DNA of 55,082 nt from Klebsormidium nitens (GCA_000708835.1 DF237159.1:2466-57547), one strand, 5' to 3'. Shown: positions 9,389 through 32,800, numbered from the stretch's first letter. Notes: generated by a model not told the origin, from the sequence alone. Made by a program: numbers and translations.

Positions 9389-12300
9389 ATGGCGGCTGCC
9401 CTGGTGAAGTCACAGTTCTACTGGCCCGGGCACTTGGTTCGACAGCCCTCAAACAACCACCAGCACACTGGAAGGATCCAAGCTAGTCTGCACAATGCAG
9501 GTCCCGTACCCACTCCATCTGCTCAGAGAGCACCACAGAAGGCCGCTGCCACTGAGAAGCCGCTACAAAGCCAGGAGAGAAAGGACAATGCAGCCATGCA
9601 AACGAAGGACCTCAAGCTAGTAACACCTTCAGAAGCAAGGGATGAGGCATCCAAGAAGCGAGCACCTCTCATTAGTCGGGAAAGAGTGAACCACCAGGGA
9701 AGGAGGAGTCTGCTTACCAAAGGCCTGATGGCGGCAGCATTGTGCCCTCTCTGTTCAGACTTGCAACACGCATCAGCTGCAGAGTGGGGCTATGGCGGGC
9801 CTGCGGGGCCGCTGAGATGGGGTGGCTTTTGTATACTAGGGAGACAGCAGTCGCCGATCGACATGCCTGTGAAAGGCACTTCATACAGGCCTGACACATT
9901 CGGCAAGCTGCAGTTCGACTACCATGCCGCTGACGTCAACATTCTAAACACGGGACACGGCACAATGCAGGTAAGCAAGACCTGCATTTCTGTCGTCAGC
10001 TTCAGATTACATTCCCTGGTGTTTTGTTGCTTACGAAGGCACTCAATGGGTCACAATGACCTCAATGGATATAGTGTCAAGAGGTGGCCAGGAGAGTTAG
10101 CAACCTGCCAGAAAGAAGAAGCATGCAAGCGACTGCACCTTCCCTCCAGGTTGACTGCAGCGTTACCAAATGCAGGAATCTTCAGTGTAGTTTTCCGGAC
10201 TCTCAGCTTGCTGTCGTGTTTGGCTTCCCCTGTTTGTTGAATCGCTGCTTTCAAAAAGGAGACGGAAATTGACGTGCAATGTTATTCTCACCCTGGAAGC
10301 TCACCAGGAGTTTCGATCGCCTCTCAGCACATGCCTCCTAAGTCTTACCTGAATTCTCTCAAGATGATCCGAAGCGAAGAACTACCTGGCTAATGTGCGC
10401 CACCGTTCGGCCATGTGCACTTCCAACCTGCGCGCTCGTATGCTTAGGGATCCACCATGATGCGGTCACTGAACCTCGGATGACATCACATCAGTGGCGT
10501 AGCAGTCTCATCACGATGCGCTCAGTGACGTTCTTTCCTCCCCGTCCAGGTCAACTTTCCGGCCGGGAGCAGCACATTGAGAGTGGGAAAAAGGACGCTG
10601 GACCTCCTCCAGTTCCACTTCCACAGCCCCAGCGAGCACGCTGTTGACGGAGAGCGGTTTGATATGGAGGCGCACATGGTGCACAGTGAGCTGTCTGTGA
10701 CCTATCATACACTATCCATCTTACCACCTGTTCATGAGAGCAGGCCTGAGTTTGCAGCAAACGGGCATTTTACTCTGGAGGTGTTAAGGAGCTCTTGCGC
10801 CTGCTGGTCAGATGCAGGACTCCTTGTCTTCTCCCAATTCATATCAGATGAAGCACATCAACAGGCTTCACATGGAAGAATTGTCTCAGCAAACAGGTTG
10901 TGTGGTGGTTGAACACAGGGTCTGTCTTTGCAATCATTGTTGTGCGTACGTCGCTGCTATGGCTGACTCAGCAGTCCGCTTTGTGCAGAGGATCGTGAAA
11001 CCGGGACCCTAGCTGTTGTTGGGTGAGTCCTGTCCTCCCATCTGATTTGGTAAAACAGCCTCTGTTGTGAGTGAGCAGGTGCCGGCAGCCATCTTCTGTC
11101 CAATCACTTTTAATAGAGGCAGGGCTTCTCTTGACCTTTCGCTCATGCATCGCTGCTTATATGCGGCATTTCTTTGAGCTTGCCCGTCAACTGCGGATCT
11201 TCTTCAGAATCTCCATAAACGTCGTTCGCTTTTTCAAACACCAAGATATACTTTCAATAAAGGAAACATATTCAATGTCATGACATTCTTGGGTTATGCT
11301 ACAGGACGCTCCTCCAGGCCGTTCCGGACGTGGAGGCCCTCTTCAACCCGGCCCTTGAAGCAGCACTTCAACTTGCTCCCCGCGAGCACGGAGCTATGAA
11401 GTAAGCTTTGCAAAATCTGCTCTTGTTTGGGGAGGCACCTCAATCACCTGCAGACCGCATTGACATGTGCATGGCTTTCATTGGACACCCTTTTAGGCTG
11501 TTTTGACCCTCGGCTGTTCGTAGGTTCCATGTAGTAGAAGTAACTCCTGTGCTTTCTGACGACTGACAGTGCGTGCTTCCTTTCTTTTCCATTCCCCAAT
11601 TGGGGTCAGGGAGCATCCATCTTGTGAAGTGACAAATATACCTTTGATTTGCATAAACCTTGTAGAGTTGTAGTCAGTTTACTGCAAAGTCTGGCAGTGC
11701 AAGCAGCAGTTGATGAAAAGGTGCTCTTCTTCTGCTCAGTAAATGTACATGATAGCTTCCGAGCCTTCAAGATGATTGTACGAATCCTGGGCGTGCAGTT
11801 ACACAATCTCAAACAGATGTCCTTTGCTTTAAAGCCTTTGGAAAGCTGAATGCTCAAAATCCCGTTGATTGCAGGCCTGCGGCAGTCTGCGCCCCCACTT
11901 GCATCAACGTGAAAGTCTCTGCTGAAGACCTCCTCCCAGTTGTCAGCGACGTAAGTGGCTCTATCCAAGAGTAATTATTTATGTCAGCTGAGATCGTTGT
12001 TACTGACGTCAGAACTCAAGCACCTGCTTTCAGGGTGGAAAGAAGTTCGTTGTGCCTTGCTGTTGCAATTCCCTGCTGTTGACAAAGCCTTGTCCTGTCA
12101 ACCCCCCCTGTCATGTTATGCCGTCTCATGATGAATAGATGCAGAGCAACAATACACAACATCGTCTCAAAAGAAGGGACTCAGGGCAGGGTAAACATGT
12201 GCCCCTTGTCTTTATGGCACCCGTGCGACCTGGCTAATGATCAAACAGCGTTCGTTCAGCAATTCCTTGCTAACATCATCATCAGGCTAGAAGGTACACT

Positions 12301-13617
12301 TCGCCTTGTGAGTTCGATTGTTCAGGGGGGCTGGTTTTTGTGCATCGTGATCGTACATATATTCTGACTAAATACTTTCTTCCTGCAGGCGGATAGCCGA
12401 TCGTACTTCCACTACGCGGGTTCGCTGACTACGCCGCCTTGCAGCGAGGGAGTTGATTGGTTCATGATGGGTGAGCGAGACGTGTATTTATAATTCGTCC
12501 ATTTGAGTGCGAGCTTATTTTGGTCAATCGGTGTCTGAAGGGGGTGCGTCTCATTGTTGAGGGCCTGGATCACTGGAAAAAAAAACGGCAACGTTAGCAT
12601 CTTTTTCTGGTCTGCTTGATGCGCTTGGGGCAGCTGGCGTCAGTTCTGCCTGCCTAAATGAAGATGCTCTGAATCGGACGATCTAGATTAGGCCCTTGAA
12701 GCCTCATCTGAGCGCCTTACTAGAGCGAGCTTTTATGTCTTAGCAGTGGAGTCGGTTTGATGAGGACAGCTTTGCACTTTCCGGACATGCCCTTTCAAAG
12801 ACTCCGAAACACTCTTACGCGCTTGCTCGAGACTCCGACGCTACCGGTTGTACCTTGCTGCTTGCAACCAGCTTCGCTGCTCGACTGCGGCTCAACCATT
12901 GGTGGAGTCATGTCTTATTGCTTGACGGGTTTTTGATCTCAGCAGCTGGCACATCGTCAGCACCACAGAATTCGGAGTTCCACCCGGGTTTGCTTTCGGA
13001 TGCTTGCTATAAGAATCTCTCGTTTGGTTCTTTATGGGACCCATACTGAAGGCAGTTCATGACAGCACATCCTAGCTGAATCTGAGTGATTGAGAGTGAC
13101 TAACTCGATTTCGGATCCGTTTTCTGCTGTGCAGGGAACACCGTTCGCATCCCGTACACGCAGCTTGTCAGCTTCCTGCAATATGTCGGCGACCAGAGGA
13201 CGCTGGCCTTCAACACTGTGAGCTTATCCGGACTCAAAAATTCTGTACGGCAAAAGTACCTTGTGAATGAGTCCTGTCGATGTTTAATAACGATCCTGGC
13301 TGGCATCTGAACCTGAATACTCGGTGGAATCTGCCCCAGAACCATGGCTCGGCTCTGACTTGCCGACAGATTCAGTGTTTTGTTTGTCTCAAGGTCATTG
13401 CACTGCTAGAAAGAAGGGGGTCTTGTCATGGGTCTTTGCGTTCTGACTCCGTCTGACGTCCATCGGAATCTGCCTGAACCCATCATGCAGCATTTACTAG
13501 CAAACGAAGGGAGACACTAAGTAAGCGTACAACGAAAAAAGCCTGACGCAGAGCGTTTTACTGCAGCGTCCGTTGCAACCAATCAGGGATCGGGAGATCA
13601 CGAGGGGCCCAGCATGA
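9389..13617 (+). CDS. CAH3: Alpha carbonic anhydrase, CAH3-type, predicted thylakoid lumen (379 aa)
   Basis: Exons 9389-9970, 10550-10685, 10989-11022, 11305-11400, 11875-11950, 12389-12470, 13135-13217, 13567-13617 (1140 nt, in frame). Bipartite signal with twin-Arg GRRSLL..CPLC..ASA|AEWGY, QSPID, NTGHGTMQVNFPAG, LLQFHFHSPSEH, MEAHMVH (three Zn His), YAGSLTTPPCSEGVDWF, NTRPLQ. These segments closely match my recollection of Chlamydomonas CAH3; orthology needs a tree. Confidence 0.92.
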
Positions 13618-16600
13618 GACCGTCGAGAGGGTGATCAAGTATCTAATGCGTTGAGAGAAGATCTTTGTGTCTCAATCTGTGGACCAATTTTTCCACCACC
13701 ACTCTCAATAGCTTGATCAGTAAAGGTTCCCCACTTAGGTGTTGCATGCGAATGAACTCGGTAGCAAGCCGTCAAAAGTTTCTTGCGCATCTGCCATGAT
13801 AAGAGCATCGTTAGCGTTCTACAGCCTTCCATCATAGGTCCTGCAAGTTTGAATGTGGAAGATACCGTACTACTCACTGCAGGACTGATCAGGTGTATGT
13901 CCTTGATCGAGAGCCTTGGTCTATTCGCATCGGCTAGACCAGGCGCTCCTTTGGTTGACCCCATGCAAGTACGTTCAGCTTCAATTCGACTTATGAAGTT
14001 GTACGTGCAGTTCAAAGGACTTTCTGTTGCATTTCTCAATCTCAGTGTGACACAAGTGTATAGGATGAACCACACATACCGCACCTCCACATGTGTATCC
14101 TCCTTTCAAATTACGATCACTGCGCATATGTTTATCAAGAGAGGAGAGAGCTACAGATCTTGTAAGTTTGTACCATACTTTCCATACAGGTGGGTAGCCG
14201 AATCTCGAATTGCCTGAGGGTTTCGCTGAAATGATAGCGGAACCATCCGATGAAATCTCCTGAAATCAAAGCCGCTCAATAACTATGCCAACTCCTAAGG
14301 ACTGATGGGGCCTGTAATTCCATCATGCAATTATACCATGCTCAGACTTGAGCGCAAGCACTGCGCAGCTGAAAGAGTGGCTTTTCAGAGCAATGTGCTG
14401 CTTCCGTATAATATTTTTGAGCTGCTGAAAGACTTTTGAAGTCTTGTCAAGCCATCATAAAGCCTTGCAGAAGGCTTACTGAAGGCTCAAATGACGATGT
14501 CTTCAATTGTCTCCCGAAACCATACGATACACTTTGCTGGTCAAATGACCATCTCTGGCCTCAGTTGTAAAAAGTGTCAACATGTGCTTAGATGAGTTCA
14601 TCACACTAAAGAGAGCTTTATGAGCGTAAACTTATGATGAACTTAAGGAGAAGCACTCATGAGGAGAAACAGGCTATACCCTAGGTCCAATTGGAAGCTC
14701 GGGAAGCTTGGCAGCCATTGCATGCCAGGCAGCTACCCGTCAGCCTGACGTCATGCAAATGCTAGTAATGTATCTGTACCCGGCGTCCGATGCGTTCATC
14801 GCAATGCTAGGCGCCCCCGAAACGGCCGGAGCCAACGGCGCTATCAGCCGGGAGGAAGGCCCGAATTCATAGTTGGTGTTCCACTGACCTGACACACAAG
14901 TATAATGATACAGTTTGGAATCGTATAACCGGCATTCCATTCCACTTGAGATGCATGATCTGCACTGAAATGAAATCCTCACAATTGGGACGTCACACAT
15001 ACGGTCTTGGAAGAATTCCATCAAGCATATCTAGGCGCCCGGGCCCGCCCGCAACATTACAAGGGCAGGCTCTCAGTATGCATGAACCTTCTGCATTCAA
15101 TTGATGATCGCTTCGATCTATACTTTATAACGGTCACGGAGCAGGTCGACGACCGGGTGCGGCGGTGCATCGATCGGCTCGCGCAGTTCAGAGCACTCTG
15201 AGTGTGAGGCCTTTGCAGCCATGTCCGGTTTTGTCAGTCGCGTTGATTTGTTCACGATCGCTGGAGGGAGGCGTAGCAGCGAGGAGCTAGTGACATTTGA
15301 ACATTTGAGCTAGGTGCTGTGGCACTCACATGCGACTTTGAGTTGGCTTGGCCAACCGGAACATTGTTTGTGTTGTTATTGTTATATTCAAGTTGCTTCC
15401 AAAGGCTCACCCTTCAAACGGACGGTCACGTGCATGCGCTTATAAAAGCTAGTGACCCGGCGTTCTGGCGCAATGTCCTTGGCATGGCTCGTGCATGGTG
15501 TCTCTTCTAGCTGACGATCATTATGCATCGATCTCCACTCATCTTCGTCGGACATATATCGCATGCGGCCCGGGCAGCCCTTGATAGAAGTTGGAGCATA
15601 CTGACCACGTACGTGCGTTTTGGGCTATGCGCACACGCGGCACCGTGCGCTTGTGAATAAGCGCGTGATGCACGTTGGACCGCGCCCGAATCTTCTGAGA
15701 ACGCAGCCATTGACACGAATGAAAGGGGGCCGAATTTCAAATGTTAGCCGCAAATTAAGTTGGCTTTCACAGATCATGTAGCCGCAAAGTTGGCTTTTAC
15801 ACATCATGCATTCTTTCGCTGCGAGCGAGGAATGATACACAGAATTCTTGCATCCGCGGAACAACTGAACACACTTTCTTCGAACATACATGGCAGTGGT
15901 TTGACCCTATATAAAATTTATCAGTACAAGCTTAGGCGCCCGCGTCTGTGCCACCCAAGCGCAGAGATAAGAGTTTGATCAATCAAACACTGATACTACC
16001 TACCTATTGAGCAAAACTAACATCGAAGCAGCATGACTAACATGGCTGATTCTCTGCAGACTACCTGGTCATGGCATACAATCACTTGGAGTCTTAGTCG
16101 ACTCAAGCAAGCAACCCAAGGCGTGACATCTGGGAATTGATCTTCCCCCTATTCCAGACCAGATCAACTGTATTTCTTCTCCAAGGCCTCCGCATCGGCC
16201 AACGGCAGGTGCTTAAGTAGCAACTGCAATGCCTGCAGCATCACCGCATCCACAAATGTCAAGTGTCTGCCCATTCAACCCGCCCTAAGGTTTCCGACAA
16301 TCTCGACAATTGAGCATTAGTGGAGAGTTGCATCAACTCTCAATAAACTGCTCTCACACAGACCTTCGAGTGACTAAAAAGATACAATCCTGATTCAATT
16401 GCGCCCAAACACCGAGTCTTTTAAGCACCTGACCTACGATGCACTATACACAATGCAACTTGCAGGAGCTACTCCAAAAAACGAGACCCGTCAATTGTGC
16501 AAGCGAACAAATACATGGACCTCAAGGCTGCCTTGACTTGCTAACCAGATCAGAAGCCCACAACTCGACAAACACACTTGCTTGACCCTTCCCGCGGTCA

Positions 16601-16694
16601 AACGTAGCATCGACTTCAACTCTGACTGATTCAATCCTAGCTAATCCGCTTATCATTGGAGCCAGCCGAGTCCGTGAGTCCCTCGGGACATACA

Positions 16695-19600
16695 TCAGTT
16701 TGTCACCTGGACGTTCGTCCGGCGCGCGGCAGCCCCGTCCGCAACCCCGTTCTGAGACGCCCCGTTGAGCTGCGCCTGCTTCTTCCCGCCGATCGCGCGC
16801 TTGTTCAGATGCTCACCCTGAAGCCGGGTCAGCTCCCGGACGTTCTTCTCGGCGGTGTTGCAAATCGCGTGGAGGGGCAGGATCGAGAACGGCTCTTCAA
16901 TCAGCACCCCGACCTGCGGCGACGTATGTTGGATCAGTCTTCATGGCAGCTTTGATAGCAATTCTGAAGATCCCGACATAAGCGGAACAGCTCTGCAATC
17001 AGCACCCTGAGCTATGGCGCTGATCAGTCTTCGTGCAAGTTTTGAGAAGCGGTCTTTCAGTCCCGAAGGTGAGCGGCAAATGTCCGATCAATCAGTCCGT
17101 TCAAAGAGGACGGGTCTCCGACCAGAACCCCGGCCTGCGGCGCTGTATGTTGATATTGGTCTTTGAGAAGGGTTTGGACAGCGGTCGTAAAATTCCGAAC
17201 ACAAGCAGTATATGTCGATCAATTGATCCATTATTAAATGAGAGCGTAAATATCGATCAATCAATCCAATAGGAAAAGACACAACATAGGCAGCCAACGT
17301 CGATCAATCAGTCCATTCGAAGAATTTCTGGTCTTCACGCCTAAGTGAGTAAAGCTTGGGCCATCAGTCTAGTTTCAAGAGCATTCTGCGCCTCCTACAC
17401 AAGAGCAGCTATGAAAACAACTTGGCTTGTTGTCAACAGCGTTCTGATCGATCAGTCCGTTCTCAGATAAACGCCTTGCAATCAATCATTCTGTGTGAAA
17501 GCCGACCTATTTCGTCCAGTAGGAGCGTGTGTCAAAAACCAGATTATGATTTGCACAGAGATGAACGGGCACATGGCTCATACAAGCCGCAAGACAGAGA
17601 TACGATCAATAAGGAAGGTGAAGCAGAATGCGACAAGTAAACCTAGGCTAAATGGGGCTCCAGGAGGTTACCCCACTACCTTGTGGGATCCGGCCAAATC
17701 ATGTGTACAAGGGAGTCTGCAAGCTAGGCTGCTTTGACCAGATGTACTTCAATCTGCCAATTGTGATTTGTGGCTCTGATCTTTCTTCCGTCGTCCAATG
17801 TTGTGCAACAATATTCAGGTCGAGAGGGGAAAAGCAGGGTGTTCCCAAGTATTAGAAAGAAGGCGCTAACCCTACCAGTCAATCAATGCTCCCTTTGTCA
17901 AAAAGGTCGAACAAGAGAAGAGAACAGCAATATGACGAATGGTGAATCCCGACCTTAGAACACCCTGAAACCCTGAACACCTCAAACCCTGAACCCTAAT
18001 CACCTTTTCAACGCAGAATTCAATGCAGAAGACTTGGGAGGCCGCCAGGAAGGTAGCCGCAATAACCATCCAAAAAAGGATTGAAAAACCGATGAATGGT
18101 GACAAAAGAGGGCATTCTGGCATGAGAACCCCTAAGCTATGAAACCCTAAAGAGCAGATCCCTACCATCTCAAAACCCTTCAAAAATCACTAGGTGTGGC
18201 ATCGCCTCTTCAATGCAGAAGAGCCCGGCAGCAGACACGAAGGTGGCCAGGACTACCACACTTAAAAAGGGGTTGTTGACACAAAATGAATGGTGGAAAA
18301 AGACGGTGAAAAACACGGCGCTTCGGCGGCGAAACCTTGAAACCCTAAAACTCTGCAATCCCAGAACCCCTCACCTCTTCCAATGCAGAAAAGCGCAGCG
18401 GCGGACAAGAAGGTGGTCAGAAGACCATCTTACAAAAACAATGAATGGTTTGAACAGACTATGAATGGTGCAAACAGAGGGCAATTTGGCGTGGAAACCT
18501 AGAACCCTACAATCTCAAAATCCCTCAGTGGCCTCACCTCTTCAATGCAGAAGAGCGCGGCGGCGGACAGGAAGGTTGCCGGCACAACCATCCAGTGGCA
18601 CGCGTCCCAAAGCGCGAGCGGCAAGAAGAAGTGCCACAGGACTAGGAAACGACTGGTCAGGCGCGTGTAGGAAAGGGGGAGGGGGGTCTTGAAGATACGC
18701 TCGCAGCCTCCAACTTGGTCGTGGAAGTGGGTCAGGTTGTGGTCCTGCAAACCGGCACAGACATCTTTAGGTTTAGCTTAACTGCGCCTGATTGAGGAGG
18801 CTGCTAACCTATAGCCCAAGAAAACAATGCGTGCGTGCATTTGGCGTCTAGAGCAGTGACTGGCCTTTCCTTTTGTATCCCCAAAATTTTATTTTGATCA
18901 GCAAACTCCAAGCTCTATGAATGTACAACAGCAGAACTGACAGCGCAATGTCAGTTCTGGGATGGAAGGGGGGGGCCCTTCTGGAATGGAAGGGGTGGGG
19001 GCCCCAGTAGACTTCAGACATACATCTCAATGCATGTCCAGAACCGGGCTTACAAGCTTCTCTAACTTTTCCTCACTTAGCTTCCTTCACGTTGTTTTTG
19101 AGCTCTGAGGAACACCTAGCTTTGTCGAAATGCATTGGGCCAGTGCATGAGAAAAGAATCCTTCTCAGGCGAACAGCAAAGTAGTCAGAAAGTGCTTGCT
19201 TACAAGGTTAACTCGCTGAAAGTCGGTGAGGTCAGTGTTCTTGGAGATGACTTGGGACATGACTTGCAGGCAGTAGTTCGGCCGGTGCTCCGTCGACGTC
19301 AAGATCTCGATCTCGTCGGAGTTCAGTCCAACGTTCTGCAGTCAAACAGAGTTGTTAACAGCTTACAAGATGAGCATTCACAGACCCACAGAATCTTTGT
19401 TGTTCCAGCAAAGAAGCACAGTCTGAAGTGGGCCCCGGGCGGCTTTTCTTCTATGACGAGATTTTGCATGTGAGAAGAGGGTGAGAGCAGAAACAGCCCT
19501 CTTGAGGCGAGGTGTGACAGAAACGACTTTGTTGACGAGATGTACCTGCCTACCTCAGGTGCTGGAGCTCAAGAAAATGCTCAGCAACGTATGAGCTACA

Positions 19601-21616
19601 AGAAATAAGCTACTTCATGCAAGGCCACATGCGGATCCCAGACCAAGTCTGGACACATCCTTGTGAACCCTAACTTCGATCTTCACTTGACCTGCATTTC
19701 TATCACAACAACCAGGAGCTGACCAGTAAACCCCAAAAAGCTTTCTGTTCCGCTGGTAACCTGCAGTTTCCATGTTACCCGCGCTTTGTCTTCTCGCAGC
19801 ATGCAGTCCTTGAATGTCACTGTCACCTAACCAGTGCTAATCAGGCCAGGTTTACGGTGTAAACCCCTCCTGCCATACCCGCATGTCGCCCACAATGCGA
19901 TCCTCTCCCAGTTTTTCAAGGCTGAGCAAGCAAGCACTAATCACTTTGGTTATCAGCACAACTTTTTCGTGTCAAAAGTAACCCCAGTTTCCAACTTACC
20001 CGCATGTCATCGACAATGTGGTCCTCGCGCAGCAAGTGGTTCTTGAACGCGTACGGGAAGGCCATCAGATAGCGCAGCACTTCCTCCCGCTCCTCGTTGT
20101 CGTCCATGTAGGACAGCGCCTGGCGCGCCAAATCGCGGACGCGATTCAGCGTCGCACCCCACATCTTACGCGCCTGCACCACAATGTGACAAATGAGTTA
20201 ATATTACAACCAATACTCTTAGTCCATTCTTTTCCGTCTCAAACAAATTGATGTTTTTCCCGCAACTCATTTAATATCGCCCACCACATATTGAGCACTG
20301 CACGACGATGATGTCAAAAAGCCCTCTTTGAAAGCGATTGTTCCAGTCACCATGTTGTTTCATTCTAGTTCCTTGTGAAAGCAAGCAATGCGGACTTTTC
20401 GTCGCAGGATAGGTGCAAATAGGGTTTCAGAGGCCATGCCTCTTGCACCGGAGAAGTGCCTGATCTAAAACCAGGGCCTCTGCCATTGCTTTCCTGTGCG
20501 GGCAACGGGCGGCCTTGCTTCAAATGACAAGCAGAGCCCAGCAGACGAATGCAACTAGACGGGAGATTGATGAAGGCAAGCTTCCAGAGCACTTTTGAGA
20601 TTAGCGCGGATGGAACCGTGCTAAACGCAGATGAGCAGATGTTCTTGCTTTGCACTAAAGGAATGTGACTGGGGGCTGTGCAACCGCAAGGACCATGTGC
20701 GCATCTGCGGCGTTTTGCTCAAGTCACAAGACTCCATTTCTTCCAAGGGACCTGGATTCCATGCCTTGCGGCTCTCAGGCAGCAATGTGCACCCACTCAC
20801 AAACGAGTCCAATGTCCTCTTAGAGCTGCTTACTAAGATGGCACAGCGAAAGTCACTCTTCATACTTCAGCTGGATGTCCACTTCTCCACATCACCAAGG
20901 CTTGACCAACATAGGTAGATGTTCCTTCAAGAAAACCCTAGTCAAACCCGGAGCAGCCGGCTCACCTCGTCGAAGCGGGAGTACGACGCATTTGTCCGGA
21001 AGACCAGCAGGAGCGCCAGGGCTGGGGCTGTCAGCTGAAGCGGGAGTGCAGATGCTTTCAGCAGGGGAAGCTCGTGCGGGAGAATATCATGAACAATGGC
21101 CTCATTGTACAGAGCCATCGCAAGGGCGCCACCTGTCAGAGCCAGGACTGGGGGCCCCAAGGCCAAGATAACGCGTGACGAACTGATGCTGAGTATGTGG
21201 CGGTAGTGCCGCGTGCTGCTCCTGTGGCGCAGCCACTCGGGGTGGCCGAAGACAGTGCGCCGGTAGACCATGCTCTCCTCCTTTTTGACATCCGCGCTGA
21301 TGGGGGTGAGGTAGTGCTTCAGGGCGACAGGTGGCGGACTGTTCGACTTTGGCGCGCTCTGGCACCGAACCGAGCGCCGCTGTGGAAGGGAAGGAGTTCT
21401 CGTCTTGCGAGCTGCTTCCTCTTTCGAGTCTGCCAGGTCGAGGGACGCCCTCAGAGATGCATGCCCCCACATTCGCTGCCATTTTTCCTTAGTGGCCAGA
21501 GGGCATCCAACTTGTGCGGGGAGCGGGTTGAATGCAGGAGCCGATCTAGCGGAGGCGGGGCCCCCCCCGGTCCAGAGGGCCTGCGGCCGCATGGCAACGT
21601 GAGCGGAAGTCGCCAT
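16695..21616 (-). CDS. VCCN: Thylakoid bestrophin-like anion channel (UPF0187; VCCN1/BEST and Chlamydomonas BST family), 460 aa, with predicted plastid transit peptide
   Basis: Exons 21616-20966, 20173-20000, 19335-19204, 18744-18538, 16913-16695 (1383 nt, in frame). Motifs RRTVF..WLRHRS..RH, QLTAPALALLLVFRTNASYSRFDEARKMWG, HRPNYCL, GGCERIFKTPLPLSYTRLTSRFL, LFCIEEVGVLIEEPF. Confidence 0.95.
16935..17470 (-). repeat. Degenerate repeats of the bestrophin last-exon acceptor region
   Basis: ggtctccgaccagaaccccggcctgcggcgctgtatgttgat (~17113) versus real ggctcttcaatcagcaccccgacctgcggcgacgtatgttggat (~16891); the motif gatcaatcagtcc recurs through ~17460. Confidence 0.65.
17960..18470 (-). repeat. 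Three degenerate copies of the bestrophin exon-4 3' end plus donor, with aaaccct-rich spacers
   Basis: ttcaatgcagaaga..gaaggt copies at ~18018, ~18205, ~18372 versus real cctcacctcttcaatgcagaagagcgcggcggcggacaggaaggtt (~18533). The ORF track shows AAGLFCIEE and ASQVFCIEF echoes of AAALFCIEE. Confidence 0.88.
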
Positions 21617-22565
21617 GGATGCAGAGTGTGTGGCTTCTGTCCAAACAGAAGGCAATGTGCTGGGTTGCCAGACTTGGCAAGACGCCTTCCTTCTCAACAG
21701 ACTTGGCAAATGAGCCGCTCCGTCGCTCGCATAGGGTGGCTCTACAGTCCCTAGGAATTCTAGTAGAAATCCTGATTGTCCAAGTGCCCCGCGTTCCAGT
21801 ACCTACTACTTCTAGGATTCAAGTTGGAAGAAGCAGCACAGCTCAGTAAGTATGGTACTCGTGTCGCTCGACCCTACTTTGTCACTAGAGTACCTGGTCG
21901 GCGGTCGCTCTAAATTGGAATTTGTAACTTCGGACGGGCTATTTCTATTTCGGAGGCCTAACAAAGCAGTCTACCGAGTACCTGGTACTTCGACCATCTC
22001 CAATCTTCGACTTTCGATGAGCTTCTCAAAGATATCGTGTGTCAATCCACCGAGTGTATTTGACAGTCTGGAATTAAGCTTCCATCTGCTTTACCCGTTT
22101 TAAATAACAGAAGTATGAAATCAGGGCGACCATTCAGATGAAACTGTGTGGCCAGTCTCCGTCTTCCCTACTGAAAGCTCCCGGTTGAGGACACAGGAGT
22201 GCACAGGAGACCAGCTTGGTGCTGCGTATCTGACCCAGCGGCCGGTAGAGCCCCACCTTGGCCGGCCGCGGGGAAATTGGGAAGGAGTCTGGAATTCGAG
22301 CGCATACGGTATAGGTATGTGTTCGGCTCAAAGCAGGTGATTTGTGCCTACCGTAGAAATCCACATATAACAAATTCAAGACTGCAAGGGTTGCGTATCC
22401 AGTTTATTATCTGATTCGGGGACACCCAAATCCTTCCGGAGCTCACCGAAAATCCGGGGCCGCACGTTTTGGTCTTCCCTGGGGGACTTTGATACTGCCC
22501 TTGCTCATGCCAGCATGCGTGCCCGGTTGTGCGCAATGTGTGGCGCACTGAACGAAGTGTGCGTC

Positions 22566-22818
22566 GTTACGTAACCAGCCCATGATCCTGAGGGATCCCT
22601 TCGTTTGAGACTTCCCCCGCCGCCCCGCGTCCTCCAACCGAGGCAGAAGGCCTAGCCCAGACCCGGTTACGTAACCCCTAATATAGGCGGTGCCTGCAGG
22701 CTGCATAATACAGATAAGGTATTCATTCCTGAATGGACAAGTGGCTCGTTCGACTGGAACGTACCGTCAGGTCTGTGTGCCATGTGATTCCATGAGGCTT
22801 CCGCGATGGTTACGTGGC
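22566..22818. promoter_or_regulatory. Candidate bZIP-type ACGT-core palindromes in the divergent bestrophin/LCIB promoter
   Basis: GTTACGTAAC at 22566-22575, GGTTACGTAACC at 22665-22676, variant GGTTACGTGGC at 22808-22818. Function is inferred only. Confidence 0.45.
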
Positions 22819-23145
22819 AGAAGTTGCTGGATTCAATGCGAGGCAACCAATGCCATCCACTAAAATTTCAAGGGACAACTTGAGCTCACCCAATTTGACA
22901 GATCTGCGGCTGTGGTACGGTCTACCCGAATCAGCATTGCATTTGGTACGTACGTTTCTCGTCTGCTCGTTCCGACAAGGAACTCGGAACAGCTCCGAAA
23001 CTTCCACAAGCGGAGACCCAAAATTCGCTGCACCTTCAAGTTGCTACATTGGGGAGGATCATTCAAAAGCGAGCATCAAAAGAAGAAAGCCCACAAACAA
23101 ACTTTTTTGGCAGCTTTCGCACGCTACCCAAACCATCCTAGCACA

Positions 23146-26100
23146 ATGGCTGCCGCAACACATGCCGCCGCCGGGCGGGTGATGAGCTTGGAGTCAACTG
23201 TTCTGGGTGCTGCGCAGCCTGTTCACACTGAGTTTGCTGGGTTGCCTCTAAGTTCCGACCGCGGCCGCGGCAACTTGTTGAGTACCAGACGCAGCTCGGT
23301 CTGGGTCCCCTTGAACGGCCAGAGGGTGCGCCCCGTTTGCGCCCTTAACGGGAGCAAGAATGTGTCGGCCCCTGCCCAGGTCTCAGGTGCGCCTTAGTCT
23401 CTCATATACTTCTGCTGCGCCTCACATTGCACATTTCCTGTTCATATCTGAGTCTGCTGATGCATTTTGAGCGCCCTTTTCAAGAGTTTCGATAACAGCC
23501 TTGCAGCACACTTGGAAGGACTGGTGCATTGTGTCAATGTCGATGCTTCTTCTTGTGAGTGGTGGTTCACATTGTGGATTCTGAGTCTTGCGATCTCAGT
23601 GGTACCTTTTGTGGGTTTCGGGTTTCGTGTTCAGAGCAACAAAGTGGCAATGGCATCAAATGATAGAGAGGATGGTATGTCGTGGGAAGCTGCTCAAGAG
23701 GAGGTCTTGCGCTATTTGTGAGGGCAATGGTAAACCAATGCAAATGAGGCACTGTGGAACCCTAATGCAACATACAATGGAGCGTGCATTTCGCAACAAC
23801 ACCTGCATTTGAGCAAGTGTAGAGATGGGGACTCTTGATTTACCAAGCTTTCCGGGAATACCATCCTGTCCAATTACCAAGCTTTCCGGGAATACCATCC
23901 GTCCAGAAGTTCAAAGAGGAAACACAACAGGAAATTCTTGAAGAGGAGGCAATGAAGAAGCAGGAACTACATTGTGTAGACCCACATTGTGCTAAGAGTT
24001 GGTGAGCTAAAGTTAGTAGACGATATTTGGAAAGACCTGCTTTGATACACTCTTCTCCATGCTTTGTCCCAACTATCCAAAGTCTTTCTCAAGCATCCTC
24101 ATTTGCTCCACACAGAAAACTGAACAAAACATTCCTTTTCCCACTTTAAACACAAAACCCTACTCAAGCCACCTCCCTTTCTTAGAAATCCTTCACCCTC
24201 TTTTCTCACTGCCTTGGCACACATTGTCTCCTCAACTGACCCACTTTCTCCCTCCCGCAGTTGAGGCGACACCTGTCCCCGCCCAGCGCCCCCAGACCGT
24301 CGCCTCCGTCCAGGCCGCCCCCCCTCTGGCCTACGTCAACAGCAGCCAGCAATACCTCCCAGCAGTGCTCGTCGGCGCAGGCCTTGCCGCGGCCTTCTAC
24401 GCGCTTTTCGGCAACAAGCAGCAGGCCCCCGCTCCTGCTCTCGCCGGCAATGCCCCCGCAGCGCCTGCGCCTCCGGCACCCGCTCCCCAGCCCATTGTCA
24501 TCAAGATTGAGCAGCCCCAGACGACGTCAGGTGGCGGCAGCTCAGTGGCTTCCAAGGCAGCTCCGACGGACGCCACGCGCAAGGCGCGGGATACGATGGC
24601 CAAGTACTTCCCGGTGGTGCAGAAGGACACCGACTTCCTCGGAAAAGTGTCGGAGGCGCTCGAGGACCTTGGTTTCAACAGGTGAGGGACTTATTCATCT
24701 GTTTGTGCATTTGGTCTCTCTTTTGTTTGTGGAGTTCGTTCATGTTGATATCGTGTACTTTGTTCATGTTGATTTCGTGTACTTTGTTCATTTCGACATC
24801 TGATGTTGGGACTGACCCTTGTGTTTGAGCTGCTTGTAGTCGCCCTGTGAATGACGAGTCCAGAGTAGGGTTTTGGAAATGTCCCTTATGGCTGACAACT
24901 GAGGAAATGAGGAAAGAATCTTGATAGAGATGGGTACTCCAAAAGTTGTGTCTCAGTTCATTGCTCAACTTCAGATAAAGGTCCCAATGAACAGGCTCCA
25001 GTCAGGACTGTGCTTACCCTCCTTTCTTTTGTTTGTTGACATTGGGAACCAGAATAAGTCTCGTCAATGGGTCTTTCAACGAGAGCTTGATATCTTCTCT
25101 ACACTACTAATGCTGTCTAGGCGCTGATGAGTTTGCATATAGAATGGATAAGTGGCTATGGGTGTTGATGCTGTTCCTTTTATTTCAACCACAACCACTC
25201 CTTGCCACGCTCAATCTTGAGCTGCATTGTACCACTTGTGTGTTTTGCTTCAAACTCGTTGTTCAGGTCACACTTTATCTTGAGCTGCATTGCACCACTT
25301 TGCCTTCAAGTGAAGCAAGCTCGTTGTTCAGGTCACACTGTATCTTGAGCTGCATTGCACCACTTTCCATTCAAGTGAAGCCAAACTCGTTGTTCAGGTC
25401 ACACTTTATCTTGAGCTGCATTGCACCACTTTGCATTCAAGTTATGATCTCACTTTCCAGACTCTTTGTTCAGGCTGAACTTGAGGGTAAAGACATTGTG
25501 CAGACTTGTACAAGCAGCTGCTTAACATTACACAGCTGAGATGTGGTTCTTGCAGAGAGCGCCATTCAGTATCTCATGACCTGTGTCTCATCTCGTGTTT
25601 TTGCAGGAACAACTGCATTGCCCTGGTCGATGCTTGCCGTGACGAGATCACCCGCGGCCTGGTTCAGAACATTGATGAGGTGAGTCCAGAATCAGTCTGA
25701 ATCAGTCTGGGGGGAAAGCAGTTGCCCACACAGACCCTTTTGTTCAGGGAAATTGGTGCTCAAATGTGAGCCCTATTCTTCAAGGATATATGCTCCAGTT
25801 CAGTCAGCTGATGCTGATATTGGCTCTGCCTTGATTGTTGACCCTGAATGCAACCCTGCTTCGATGTTTTGAGGGGTATTCTGATGCTTTTGTCGCGTTC
25901 AGCTCAGAGCTTCTGCACAGGAACAGTCATTGTTTGCTCTTGATCGTCAGTGCACTTGCCTCTTTAAAGGCACAGTCAGTGAGAAGGGATTGAGAAGAGG
26001 GTTGTGCAGACCCTTTTGCAGCTTCAAGTCCAGAACAGATTGATGTTCCAGCAATGCACCAGTTGAAGTCCCTTGAGAATCACAGTGACTCCCATCCCTC

Positions 26101-28326
26101 CATACGTGGAGCTTATCTTCGCTCATGTCATGCAGATTTACGGCGAGTCGTTCAACATTTCCGGCCTAGGAGGGTATGTCAACTGCGGCAAGACCGGCCT
26201 AGGGGCTGGCATGGCCCACTCCCCCACCCTCCCTGACCGCGACCAGGACGGCAAGATCCGCGAGAAATGTGAGCTTTCCTGGTTTTTGACTTGTTCTTCA
26301 AAGTGCATCAGAAGTCCCTGCCGCAACAATTGCACAGTCCTTTAAGATGCAGGAAGGTTTGTGACCTATGATTCCCATACAGAGTAACTGGTATCTGGCC
26401 AGTGCTGACTTGAGAACTTCAGACTCGAGAGAAGTCTTCACTGGAAGTAGAAGCCATAGAAGCTCAAACAACAATGAATCTCAGGTCCAACCAGATCTAC
26501 AGAATTGCAACCTCTTACCACTTCAAAAGACATTTTGAGAGACGCCCTATCACTTGCATTACCCAGTCGCCTATAGAAACCCAGGGGTTGCTTCATAAAC
26601 CAGCAAGTTCATGCAGAACTTTCATTGAAACTCTTTTTGTTTACTTAGAGTTCCTGGTAAACCCTCTGACGCAATGCTTTCAACCCATGTGCAGATGTCT
26701 TCTTCGCTTTCCCCCACGTGGCTGTTAGCGCCGACGGCGCCGAGGGCATGGTTCAGCGCATTGGGCGCGAGAAGATCTCCAGCGCATGCGGCGCGTTGAT
26801 CGCGATCCAGGGAGAGGCGAAAGGCTGGTCCGGTGATGCACAGTACCCGGACGACATCGAGTACACCATTCTGAGGAACAAGGTGCTCCACAAGGTAAGC
26901 CGTCGATTCGGTGTGACTGTGTTGCTTGGCATCGCATTGAACTTACTCTCCACCGCTCGCTTTGAAAGCATCCCGCCGCTTTCATCCACTCCCTTGACCA
27001 ATCATGTGGAACTCTCCGCCATTCAGTGGAGTTCTTTTCTGCATAAGCAAACTCATTACCACAGGCTTTCAGTGGAGCCGAATGACTTTCAAATAATCTT
27101 CTCCTGGGGTTGCTGCTCTAACAGGGTGCGCAGCATTTACAGTCCATTTCATTCAGCCTTGCTCAACTGCGTCTTTGGTACGGATTCTCCAACGTCTGAC
27201 GCCAGCTATCGCCGTGTGCAGCAATCGTGCCTATGCAACATGGCGACCCAGACGCCGTCGCTTATGGATGTCACCAAGACCGCCCTTGACGTAAGCAATC
27301 CAGCATACTCTGAAGACGAAACTCTAAATTGACTCTTGATCCAGCATACTCTGAAGACGAAACTCTAAATTGACTCGGATCAACAATCCCAAAAGGCTCT
27401 TCAGATACTTGTGCGGGACTGTTGCTGCCAGGCTTCGAACGTTCAGTCGGATTTTTCCGAGGACCGGTAGACGTTTCGACCACACAGTCGGACGTCCTTG
27501 GTCATTCGTTTGTGCATGAAGGATCACTGACGGCTAGTCCTCTGTCTGTGTTGGTTTGAAACACCTTGACGAGCGACATGTAGTCCCACATTAATATACC
27601 TTACAAGCGAACATCGAGAGAAAGCTGTCCGCTTGCTGAGCATATCCGGTTCACTGTGTGCAGGTGATCACAGAGGACCTGAACGACTTGCTTTCCAAGG
27701 TCGTCGATCCTGCAAAGGCAGACTTCGCCGTCGTCACCGGCATTCAGATCCACGCAGGAACATCAGAGGTAAGCAGAGGATCCATCCTCTGACAGTCCAT
27801 TTCTTGCATCCGAGTTTGATTTCCCAGTGGATATCAGATCAGTGTGAGCCAACGCAGATTACATCAAAAGATCCTAGCAACTCGCAGAGTCTACCAGCCT
27901 TTTGACTTCTCACTCCTCCATATTTGGGTCTGTTCTGGAGTACGAAGTTGCTGTGCCTCTTCCGCTTCCGTTCCTTTCCCGTCCTGAGCCCCAAATTTGC
28001 TGTTGCTATTGGCCGCTCTTGTTGGCACAGCGTTTCAGTGGTCTCTCGAGTTTGGAAGGACATTGACCTCCGAAAGGACAGAAAGTCTGTTAGCCTTAAT
28101 GCTACCATAACCTGTCCTAACCTGTGGTTTTTTCCCCCCGGTGCAGGCTCCCGATGATCAGAACCAGTTCGTGGACTACGTTGCCCCGGGCACCATGTAC
28201 GCCGTGGTTAACGGCCAGGGTTACTCGCTTGACTGGCGCTGGGAGAACGGCTCGGTGATCTCCAAGAAGATGCCCGCAGGCACCCCTGACAAAGTGCCGG
28301 CCCTTGAGCTTATTGGTGCGAAGTAG
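23146..28326 (+). CDS. LCIB: LCIB/LCIC-family (limiting-CO2-inducible, beta-CA-fold/theta-type carbonic anhydrase) protein, 484 aa, with plastid transit peptide and extended N-terminus
   Basis: Exons 23146-23379, 23635-23674, 24261-24681, 25607-25679, 26136-26268, 26695-26894, 27222-27290, 27664-27768, 28147-28326 (1455 nt, in frame). Family motifs: NCIALVDACRDE, YGESFNISGLGG..CGKTG..AGMAHSP, YVFFAFPHVAV, SACGAL, ITEDL..VDPAKADFAVVTGIQIH, YVAPGTMYAVVNG. Cys/His/Cys Zn ligands are present. Confidence 0.95.
23840..23900. repeat. Direct duplication (27 bp, period 34) in LCIB intron 2
   Basis: ttaccaagctttccgggaataccatcc occurs twice. Confidence 0.85.
24738..24792. repeat. Short tandem repeat (~24 bp) in LCIB intron 3
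   Basis: gttcatgttgatatcgtgtacttt / gttcatgttgatttcgtgtacttt / gttcat. Confidence 0.75.
25212..25442. repeat. ~62-bp minisatellite x4 in LCIB intron 3
   Basis: Unit atcttgagctgcattgcaccactt...aactcgttgttcaggtcacact repeated; no resemblance to an exon. Confidence 0.88.
27298..27376. repeat. Direct tandem duplication (~42 bp) in LCIB intron 7
   Basis: atccagcatactctgaagacgaaactctaaattgactc occurs twice. Confidence 0.88.
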
Positions 28327-29815: not shown

Positions 29816-32800
29816 TTAACCCGCTTCTTGCAGCTTCCGCTTGCCGGCCCGCACTCTCCGGCAAAACACCTCGAACGACGGACTCAAGTCCACGGACTTG
29901 ACCAGCTGCGCGTAGCTCTTCTCCTGGAACCATTTCGTGAGCAGTTCGTTCGCGTCGGGCAGCGTTTGCAGCAGCTCTCTGAACTTGTTCTTTTGGACCT
30001 TCCGCTTGGCGATTTCGGTGGTTTTGTCGTATTGGGGGCTGTTGTCCGCTTCGGACGCTAGAGCGTCGTTGATGAGGCCCCACGACATCGCGATCATGTC
30101 CACGAGAGCGGACCTGCAGAACGAGTATGGGGAGGATTCTGGTTTTAGGCTCCTTTGGAAAGAACGGGTTTAGCATTGTCGATAAGGCCCTACGAAAAAG
30201 TAATCGTGTCCACAAGAGCGGACCTGCAGAACGAGTATGGAGAGAAAAATGTCTCCAGATTTTGGAAAGGGCCGCGAGGGGGACGTTGATTAGACCCCAG
30301 AAAAAGGCACTTAATGTCCACGAGAGCGGATCTGCGGAACGAGTATGTGGAGGAATCTATCTGAGGACTTGTTTGAAAGGGACACGAGGGCGTTGTTGAT
30401 GAGACCCCAAGACACGACGCTCAAGTTCACAAGAGGAAACCTGGAGATTAAATACGGAAAACAGACCATCTTCAGACTTGTTGGAGAGAGGGATTTTGCA
30501 GAGAGCAGGAAGGAAGGGCAAATCTTGACGTCTGGCCAGTCCAAGAGTGTCGAACGGCAGAACGAGATTGGGGGGAAAAGTTGGATGCCATCATGTCCAA
30601 AAAGAGTGACCTGCGGAACTTGATTAGGCGGAAGAGCGCGTTGAAGATAAGGGCGTGAGGGACAAGGAAGCGGACGCGAAGAATGAGAAGAAGGGAAGCG
30701 AACATTCAATCAAACATGAAGGTGACGTCAGTTGTACGGAGATAAGAGCTGGCGGGCAGACGGAGCGAGAGAGCATCCAAATAAAGTGGGAGTGCAAATA
30801 AAGCAAAGTTGCACCTTGTCCAGGTATAACCTAGAAAACGGAGAGCGTAAGGAGAGACAACAGCCGAGAGACACTAGGGCAGGGCAAGACCAAAGGTAAG
30901 TCCAAAGAGAAGTAGATACACAATCCTTATCCTTTCAGCAACTATGACAGAGGATTATGCTGACTGCATGACCGCGTGATCTTTGCGCTGACTGCATGAC
31001 CGCGTGATCTTTGCACGTGCCAGTTGAAACAACCCGTCCTTCGAATACATCCAAAACACCAAAGGGTGAGAACAAGTTTGCAAATCTAGAAGACCCTAAT
31101 CAAGGTCCGACGGGTACCAACTGAGCTTTTCTTCACATTCCGGGCTGTTAAAACCCGTCCCATGATGTGTTTCGCTTACTGGTGCTCATTTTGTACCTCT
31201 GAATATTTCCAAGAACGACGCCCTTCGAGTGGACACCTGAGCTGTCTGTCACAAGTTCAAACTCCACGAACGAGCCAAATTCCCTCAACAGGGCTGGAAT
31301 GCAAGGGTAAAGAGGGGGACGCAAACTGCCGAAATACGTCAAACCCGTGCTTGCGTTATGACAACTACATCGCAATCTCGATTCAGGACGACCGTAATGC
31401 CACCGGAACAAGCAGAAACGGGGCGGTCCGCAGCCAAAAAATGCTGACCCGGGCTAACTGCGAAGACAGAAAGGTCCGGCACAAGACAAGCCTCATCGAG
31501 AATGGGTGAAAGGAGGGGACAAATAGTGGAAACACAATGTCCTTCAAGAGGGCTTCGTGGTGGCGTGCACGATGCAGCGACCAATCACTCATAATGTTCG
31601 ACTCGAAATCGAAGTCGTTGGTCGCTGCTTCGACTTTTATGCTGACGGATGCTCGGCGGCCGAAAGGCTCAGCGTGCGCATACACGGGCGCCTTTGTGAC
31701 GTCATGCGGATGCAACCGCTGACGCCCACTTCAAAGGCTGGGTCGAAAGATTTCGCACCTGAGCTGGGGCGGCCGCAGGCCCAGCACGACAATTCTTGCA
31801 CACGTTGACCTGTACTTGCGCAACGTCAGACACAAAGTCCGGTTCCGTTTGCGAAATGGCGGTAACGGAAAAGGCAGCGGAACAGGCGGAAAATGGGCGG
31901 CTCGCATGCCAAAAAATGCGCACCTGAGCTGGGGCGGCCGCAGGCCGAGCGTGGACATGCTGGCGCACGCGATGGCGCCCTTCTCAGGGCCGACCAAACC
32001 CTCCAGCACCTCCAGCGAGAACTGGCCCACCAGCCGCTTGCACTCAGTCTCGGGGATCGCCTGCGGGCAAAATAAACAGTGGGTCAGCTTTCCTGCCTTA
32101 CAAACGAGCCTGTCAGTGCGGGGGAAGGCAATAGAACAAATCTGGTTGGACCGACCTCAAGTTGCAATGTGTCGTGGAAACTCTTGGCATGATCCAAGAA
32201 CGAAAATCAGACATATCTGTCTCACAATCCATCTAAATGTACCTTCCGGCTCGAGACTTGCTTAGCCAGTGACAGCCTCCGTCAGCTGTTCCATAAAGCC
32301 CTTCCCCACCCCGCGCCGAATAGATCCCGTCAAACTTCGACTGAACCTGCTTGAATATCATTCTGACATCCTGAGCTTCAATCCCGGAGTCTGACTTGTG
32401 GCACGCCAGCGATTAGGCTTGGACCATGCAGAAATTCGACCTGGAAAGGACTCGGACAAGACGCCCAGGTGAGCGACAGGCCAGAGACTCTTGCATCCGA
32501 AGACCGCCCGACACGGGGCGAGTGCATCGTTTAATGGGGTTTGCCTGACCTGCTCTTTGTTCACCGCAAAGCTGGATTTTATTCTTCATACCTTCGAAAC
32601 ACTAGGGACCCCCATCCAACGGTGAAACGAAAGTTGTGTTCAGGCCTCGAACGCTTGCGGACGGACTGTCGTCCTCGCGCTGCCAACAGAAAAGTTTGCC
32701 CGTAGACACGTTGTCATCGTCCACCCGTCCTCTCCTTGTTTCTCATGTTACAAGCTCCACCCAGACAGGGGGGTAAGAGTTCGGTTGCCGAAACCGTGAG

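Follow-up and report, generated by a model that had tools for sequence, protein, structure and literature searches.

Three consecutive genes in the nuclear genome of the streptophyte alga Klebsormidium nitens (GCA_000708835.1, scaffold DF237159.1) encode a CAH3-type alpha carbonic anhydrase (CA), a VCCN1/BST-type bestrophin and an LCIB protein, the same three families that make up the CO2 loop of the Chlamydomonas CO2-concentrating mechanism (CCM). The genes span 9389–28326 of the window that we analysed, a stretch of 55,082 nucleotides (scaffold positions 2466–57547) whose own numbering is used for all positions below. On balance, we favour the view that this trio is a real neighbourhood encoding the core of a passive pyrenoid CO2 loop, and that its linkage is most likely non-random, old in the Klebsormidiophyceae and labile.

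The public annotation places three consecutive genes in this interval, on alternating strands (CA +, bestrophin −, LCIB +) and with limits identical to those of a first-pass annotation made from the sequence alone. One exon chain with GT/GC-AG introns per gene yields the annotated protein exactly, with eight coding exons for the CA, five for the bestrophin and eight for LCIB, confirming that the genes are consecutive, intact and spliced; full-length Pfam matches of 130, 280 and 181 bits likewise bear out the three family assignments of the first-pass annotation. Its statement that no recognisable gene lies inside the trio also stands: no open reading frame with a Pfam domain was found between the three genes, and tRNA and Rfam searches of the window returned no match. 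The locus has the make-up of a eukaryotic functional gene cluster, with at least three non-homologous genes of one pathway as immediate neighbours, provided that the three proteins serve a single pathway in K. nitens, as we infer. A rough estimate, on what we take to be about 16,000 genes and 1 to 5 members per family, puts the chance of three such families lying consecutively well under 1 genome in 10,000.

The CA gene (protein P0001, 379 amino acids; 9389–13617, + strand) has coding exons at 9389–9970, 10550–10685, 10989–11022, 11305–11400, 11875–11950, 12389–12470, 13135–13217 and 13567–13617, an exact chain whose exons are 100% identical to P0001 by tblastn. The protein matches the Pfam family Carb_anhydrase (PF00194) with 130 bits over profile positions 5–251 of 254. 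Its closeness to CAH3 is a ranking among solved structures only, in which the best relative, with 236 bits, is 4xiw, which we take to be Chlamydomonas CAH3; the runner-up among solved CAs has 121 bits. The FHFHSPSEH, EAHMVH and SLTTPPC motifs, which hold the zinc histidines and the Thr-Thr pair, align to CAH3, so that the alpha-CA fold is present together with its three zinc histidines and its Thr-Thr/Glu network. Alignment to the mature CAH3 chain starts at residue 131 (A131, the mature start), and immediately N-terminal to this residue stands GRRSLLTKGLMAAALCPLCSDLQHASA. A lumen-type signal is encoded at 9701–9778 (+ strand), with twin arginines at amino acids 105–106, a hydrophobic stretch, CPLC and an ASA cleavage-type site at amino acids 128–130. 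All seven CAH3-like homologues retrieved have a signal of the same pattern, with RR, a hydrophobic stretch, CP[LV]C and an AAE|W.YG-type end. Its features are those of a twin-arginine signal for the thylakoid lumen, which would place the enzyme there. The description of this protein as CAH3-like, with a twin-arginine lumen-type signal, is thus borne out by the difference between 236 and 121 bits together with the conserved signal pattern. Within the signal, CP[LV]C ahead of the AxA site (9740–9760, residues ~118–124) is kept in all CAH3-like precursors retrieved; because these sequences are otherwise only ~45% identical, its conservation hints at a function, either in the signal or in redox or metal handling.

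The bestrophin gene (P0008, KFL_002100030, 460 amino acids) lies on the − strand at 15851–21616, with its coding part at 16695–21616 in an exact chain of exons at 21616–20966, 20173–20000, 19335–19204, 18744–18538 and 16913–16695. The product carries a complete domain, matching Bestrophin_2 (PF25539) with 280 bits over profile positions 2–288 of 288, and it aligns with 341 bits over residues 87–444, including the pore-forming region, to 7ek1, a bestrophin-like protein solved by cryo-EM that is presumably the thylakoid channel VCCN1. The named top database matches are land-plant VCCN1/2. An HCO3- conductance and a CCM role are suggested by the gene neighbourhood and the literature, and they stay presumptive because, of the characterised proteins, the land-plant Cl- channel VCCN1 is nearest to this bestrophin; the spacer that the gene has in common with LCIB would point to an HCO3- role for the channel.

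Two features of the bestrophin transcript stand apart from the question of linkage. Beyond the coding exons, a further 3' exon (16231 to ~15851, − strand) is joined in RNA from either of two donors, 16693 or 16706, by an intron absent from the annotation. Donor 16693, with about twice the depth of the other, keeps the annotated stop, so that this intron falls in the 3' untranslated region (UTR), while donor 16706 skips the stop and would swap the C-terminal VTN for 22 other residues. The 1.6-kb intron that follows exon 4 contains three degenerate echoes of the 3' end of that exon, including the donor region, at 18019–18072, 18196–18258 and 18366–18428 (identity 80%, 84% and 60%; − strand gene). 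RNA splices solely from the true exon 4 donor at 18538, and the echoes are lineage-specific, because the corresponding intron in a relative (J, introduced below) is only ~420 nt long.

The LCIB gene (P0278, KFL_002100040, 473 amino acids; 23146–28326, + strand) is likewise an exact chain, with coding exons at 23146–23386, 24261–24681, 25607–25679, 26136–26268, 26695–26894, 27222–27290, 27664–27768 and 28147–28326. It matches the Pfam family LCIB_C_CA (PF18599) with 181 bits, and its best solved relatives are Chlamydomonas LCIB (5k5w, 182 bits) and LCIC (5b5x, 165 bits). Domain, Cys-His-Cys set and catalytic Asp and Arg are all present: C231-R232-D233-E234 (CRDE), H297 (PH) and C321 (CG) are invariant in a 15-sequence alignment of streptophyte LCIBs, and we take these motifs, from LCIB structures, to carry the Cys-His-Cys zinc ligands. 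N-terminal to the domain, 24356–24499 (+ strand) encodes a predicted membrane anchor (amino acids 113–131, LPAVLVGAGLAAAFYALFG; Kyte-Doolittle 19-residue mean 1.89) and a Pro/Ala-rich linker. Hydrophobic segments of the LPAxxxGAxLxAAxY type recur in Klebsormidium-type LCIBs and in most Closterium LCIBs; most of the streptophyte LCIBs examined thus share the anchor, and anchor and linker could account for the membrane-bound LCIB of hornworts. With its predicted anchor, and as the single LCIB found in K. nitens, the protein is not of the soluble stromal type that forms an LCIB-LCIC complex around the periphery of the pyrenoid. Judged by its predicted features, it resembles the membrane-bound hornwort type rather than the soluble Chlamydomonas type, LCIB to LCIE of Chlamydomonas being soluble and without transmembrane domains (PMC10096703).

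Evidence that the linkage is old comes from gene-context look-ups of homologues, which gave five informative loci; each is similar to K. nitens at the level of exons only, and they must therefore come from different species. In the relative J (two JGI metagenome contigs of ~100 kb, L002 and L009; domain identity ~85% to K. nitens), LCIB and bestrophin stand head to head across a 1.57-kb spacer. On both sides of the pair, the flanks in J are unlike those of K. nitens, which shows that LCIB and bestrophin stayed together while their surroundings changed. In the relative E (an ENA contig, L007 and L008; 66–75% domain identity), LCIB and CA converge at a distance of 4.4 kb, and no bestrophin separates the two. 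The E contig stops 1.3 kb upstream of LCIB, and the bestrophin of this lineage was not found among the fetched matches; a divergent bestrophin beyond the contig end is possible, and if it is present, E would differ from K. nitens by a single inversion of the pair. At the closest CA locus (L006, an independent Logan contig), the sequence is collinear with K. nitens from the upstream kinase gene through the CA and ends 1 kb after it. The contig of a further bestrophin lineage (L011) ends too soon to inform on linkage. Quick trees set K. nitens, J and L006 on one side; in the CA tree alone, E and a further lineage, D, come out on the other (68% bootstrap), and in a tree of Klebsormidium-type LCIBs E takes no firm place (bootstraps 32–36). 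Linkage hence occurs to either side of the deepest CA split in the sample, in different forms, and has been lost in some lineages. The microsynteny proposed as a check in the first-pass annotation was accordingly found in part: the LCIB-bestrophin pair recurs in J and an LCIB-CA adjacency exists in E, but none of the contigs from relatives shows the full trio, and the D and Closterium loci are unlinked.

The two divergent start codons of bestrophin and LCIB are separated by a spacer of 1.53 kb (21617–23145), which holds both 5' UTRs and probably acts as a shared bidirectional promoter region. The K. nitens and J spacers align in blocks only, the GGTTACGTAACC palindrome included. By blastn, block 1 (22519–22600) has 74% identity to J and block 2 (22848–22932), 214–298 nt upstream of the LCIB start codon, has 81%, with the surrounding spacer unalignable; block 2 would be a promoter element or else belong to the 5' UTR of LCIB. 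The palindrome lies at 22566–22575, inside block 1, with a second copy at 22666–22675, and a motif search of the spacer located TTACGTGGC at 22810–22818. These three sites are copies of one ACGT-core element, GGTTACGT(A/G), a candidate bZIP-type site; copies 1 and 3 are within J-conserved blocks, and copy 2 is partly conserved in J.

Transcription was followed in four RNA runs over 13000–18900. The last CA intron is spliced in all four (joint 13217>13567, GT..AG), and the transcript ends near 14018, the 3' UTR reaching to about that point. For the bestrophin, joints at high depth mark the last coding intron (16911>18536) and the 3' intron (16231>16693 and 16231>16706), and this transcript ends near 15851. 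Between them, RNA depth is zero at ~14.2–15.75 kb except for a piece of 43 nt, leaving an untranscribed gap of ~1.8 kb between CA and bestrophin. Depth is high for both genes, and the bestrophin/CA depth ratio is ~3–5 in four of four runs, although contig depth reflects expression poorly. In 19 RNA-type runs that come from many studies, very small assemblies among them, LCIB exon 2 is complete (1.00). All three genes thus appear in RNA-type assemblies, and splicing was seen directly for CA and bestrophin only. The proposal that the locus is operon-like failed: CA and bestrophin are separate, convergent transcripts with zero RNA depth between them, so the genes, which are neither co-directional nor carried on one RNA, do not form an operon. 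The trio is three monocistronic spliced transcripts, of which those of bestrophin and LCIB diverge and that of the CA converges on bestrophin. The 43-nt piece itself (15314–15356) is probably a dispersed repeat, because the RNA contigs that contain it continue into unrelated sequence on both sides; contigs from three runs carry a single additional T after 15329 when compared with the assembly.

Compared with the Chlamydomonas loop of LCIB/LCIC, BST1-3 and CAH3, the K. nitens trio represents the same three families, with a CA far closer to CAH3 than to other solved CAs, the same kind of lumen signal, and an LCIB domain that has CrLCIB and CrLCIC as its nearest relatives and retains the zinc-site motifs. 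It differs in that the LCIB has a predicted anchor, that an LCIC-like partner was not seen, and that the channel is closest to VCCN1 and not to a characterised BST. In Chlamydomonas, the genes of the three families presumably lie on different chromosomes. Closer in lineage is the pyrenoid-based CCM of the hornwort Anthoceros agrestis, a streptophyte with the same three components: a membrane-bound LCIB, a thylakoid BST1 and a lumenal CAH3. In a published tree, the K. nitens homologue is sister to the hornwort LCIBs (PMC8075897), and the hornwort LCIB is membrane-bound and co-localises with TIC40 (bioRxiv 10.1101/2024.06.26.600872), in line with the anchor predicted in K. nitens. According to the hornwort preprint, CAH3 keeps a lumenal transit peptide there; this preprint makes no mention of gene linkage of the trio. 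The bestrophin also resembles land-plant VCCN1/VCCN2, the 341-bit match over residues 87–444 being the measure of that likeness, but VCCN1 operates in plants without a CCM and without LCIB, whereas the K. nitens gene shares a spacer with LCIB.

Groupings of CCM genes are known elsewhere, in forms that differ from the K. nitens trio. CAH1, CAH2, LCIE and CCP1 presumably lie near the Chlamydomonas genes CCP2 and LCID. The last two have consecutive gene numbers on chromosome 4 (CCP2 Cre04.g222750, then LCID Cre04.g222800; PMC8320531), and pairing of CCM genes therefore has a precedent in Chlamydomonas. The statement in the first-pass annotation that the three families are unlinked in that alga thus needs a qualifier, since the CCP2-LCID adjacency shows CCM gene pairing there. 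The likeness is that of an LCIB-family gene adjoining another low-CO2-inducible gene; the Chlamydomonas cluster, however, consists of mitochondrial carriers and periplasmic CAs and is largely built by duplication, whereas the K. nitens trio covers three steps of a single chloroplast loop with genes that are not homologous. In cyanobacteria, the CCM operons (ccm, cmp, sbt) likewise group genes for successive steps in handling inorganic carbon, but these are truly polycistronic, in contrast to three monocistronic, intron-rich nuclear genes on alternating strands. Within the literature that we searched, there was no mention of the adjacency of the K. nitens trio, of a streptophyte CCM gene cluster or of these gene identifiers, in agreement with the first-pass annotation, to which no description of such a module was known. 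What was already known is that the genes are annotated and that the LCIB was used in a published tree (PMC8075897); what is new is their adjacency, in a group, the streptophyte algae, for which molecular descriptions of the CCM are almost absent (PMC5633629).

The most economical reading of these loci is that the three families would have become linked early in the Klebsormidiophyceae, with the LCIB-bestrophin pair as a stable core that travels as a unit, probably because both genes share a promoter region, and with a CA whose position varies between lineages. In the functional model, a membrane-anchored LCIB would hydrate CO2 that enters or leaks into the stroma to HCO3-, the VCCN1/BST-type bestrophin would pass HCO3- across the thylakoid membrane, and the Tat-targeted CAH3-type alpha-CA would make CO2 from HCO3- in the acidic lumen of pyrenoid-traversing thylakoids. 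This order from LCIB through bestrophin to CAH3 is borrowed from Chlamydomonas (PMC6708349) and from the hornwort spatial model. Klebsormidium has pyrenoids traversed by thylakoids and pH-drift evidence for a CCM (PMC5633629), and the model fits the alga because of this anatomy and physiology. The subcellular locations, the HCO3- conductance, the co-regulation and a selective value of linkage are what we infer beyond the gene structures themselves.

Several observations weigh against a non-random, functionally coherent trio. In J, the 12.5 kb beyond LCIB and the 7 kb beyond bestrophin contain no CA. In lineage D, neither LCIB nor CA lies within 10 kb of the bestrophin (L003), and the CA (L004) stands without either partner over the 4.4 kb upstream and the 6.4 kb downstream of it. 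Both partners are likewise missing near the LCIB gene of Closterium NIES-54 and near those of five metagenomic loci; a metagenome scan with an LCIB profile turned up six loci, not one of them with a bestrophin or CA beside it. A k-mer search found no 8-mer or longer word that is conserved in the bestrophin/LCIB spacer and recurs in the CA promoter, and the excess of 7-mers common to spacer and CA promoter is small and unconvincing. Among characterised proteins, the bestrophin comes nearest to a Cl- channel from plants that lack a CCM. The hornwort LCIB is not CO2-regulated (PMC8075897), so that a common induction of the trio by low CO2 could be missing even from a working module.

The unlinked loci in J, D, Closterium and the metagenomes, together with the lack of a common promoter 8-mer, are also what would be expected if the three proteins had their usual chloroplast jobs and lay together through an accident of rearrangement, with no shared regulation or selection. 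The survival of the pair in J needs no selection, because a spacer of 1.5 kb is a small target for breakpoints. We regard this as the main rival, with a real but minor chance of being correct. It is opposed by the improbability of three specific small families being adjacent by chance (on rough assumptions, well below 1e-4 per genome), by the two pairings, LCIB-bestrophin in K. nitens and J and LCIB-CA in E, that lie across the deepest CA split sampled, and by the J pair, which is intact with conserved spacer blocks though both flanks have changed. Improbable, in our judgement, is that the genes serve purposes other than a CCM, the bestrophin as a VCCN1-like Cl- channel that tunes the proton-motive force, the CA in the service of photosystem II and the LCIB as a general stromal CA. 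The VCCN1-likeness of the bestrophin, with land-plant VCCN1/2 as its named top matches, fits this explanation, as does a possible photosystem II-supporting role of CAH3, cited in a review (PMC10814762), and as does high expression in every run examined, which suggests constitutive rather than inducible expression. Among land plants, however, LCIB is kept only in hornworts, and it is common to pyrenoid-bearing algae (PMC8075897); the localisation pattern of hornwort BST1, CAH3 and LCIB is consistent with a CCM (hornwort preprint); HCO3- is conducted by bestrophins generally (Qu & Hartzell, as cited in PMC5948301); and Klebsormidium has a pyrenoid and CCM physiology (PMC5633629).

An assembly artefact, in which mis-scaffolding joined the trio, is exceedingly improbable. 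In its favour, all four runs over the gap between CA and bestrophin are RNA, but the whole window contains no N gap, two independent ~100-kb metagenome contigs of a relative show the bestrophin-LCIB junction again, the CA-LCIB junction is present in the independent ENA contig, and the kinase-CA side is collinear with the independent Logan contig.

Taken as a linked CCM neighbourhood, the reading that we prefer, the locus offers genomic-context evidence that the LCIB-bestrophin-CAH3 trio known from the models for Chlamydomonas and hornworts also forms a unit in a streptophyte that diverged early, and it connects a VCCN1-type channel with the handling of inorganic carbon. It also points to a compact, natural cassette of ~19 kb, complete with a 1.5-kb two-way promoter, that could be tried in pyrenoid engineering in crops, and it lets one ask, on a concrete example, whether selection acts on the linkage of pathway genes in the nuclear genomes of algae. 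Its interest is solid, not exceptional, until co-regulation or wider conservation of the linkage appears. A bolder proposal, which we put forward tentatively and consider rather unlikely, is that the trio is a remnant of an ancestral, selected CCM supergene of early streptophyte algae, with LCIB and bestrophin on one bidirectional promoter. If this were true, the VCCN-type bestrophin would have begun as the HCO3- gate of a pyrenoid CCM, and the Cl- role of land-plant VCCN1 would be a later re-use after the loss of LCIB and, in vascular plants, of CAH3 too.

The neighbours of the trio are unrelated to it, with the kinase gene upstream of the CA and, downstream of LCIB, a gene for a 507-amino-acid BTB-like protein followed by a lipase gene. 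The 507-amino-acid protein is encoded at 29816–35042 (− strand), adjoins LCIB and has no Pfam record; by eye, its exon 1 looks BTB/POZ-like and is followed by an acidic tract. We considered it as a fourth CCM gene and dropped it because of this BTB-like start, a resemblance noted by eye and unchecked against Pfam.

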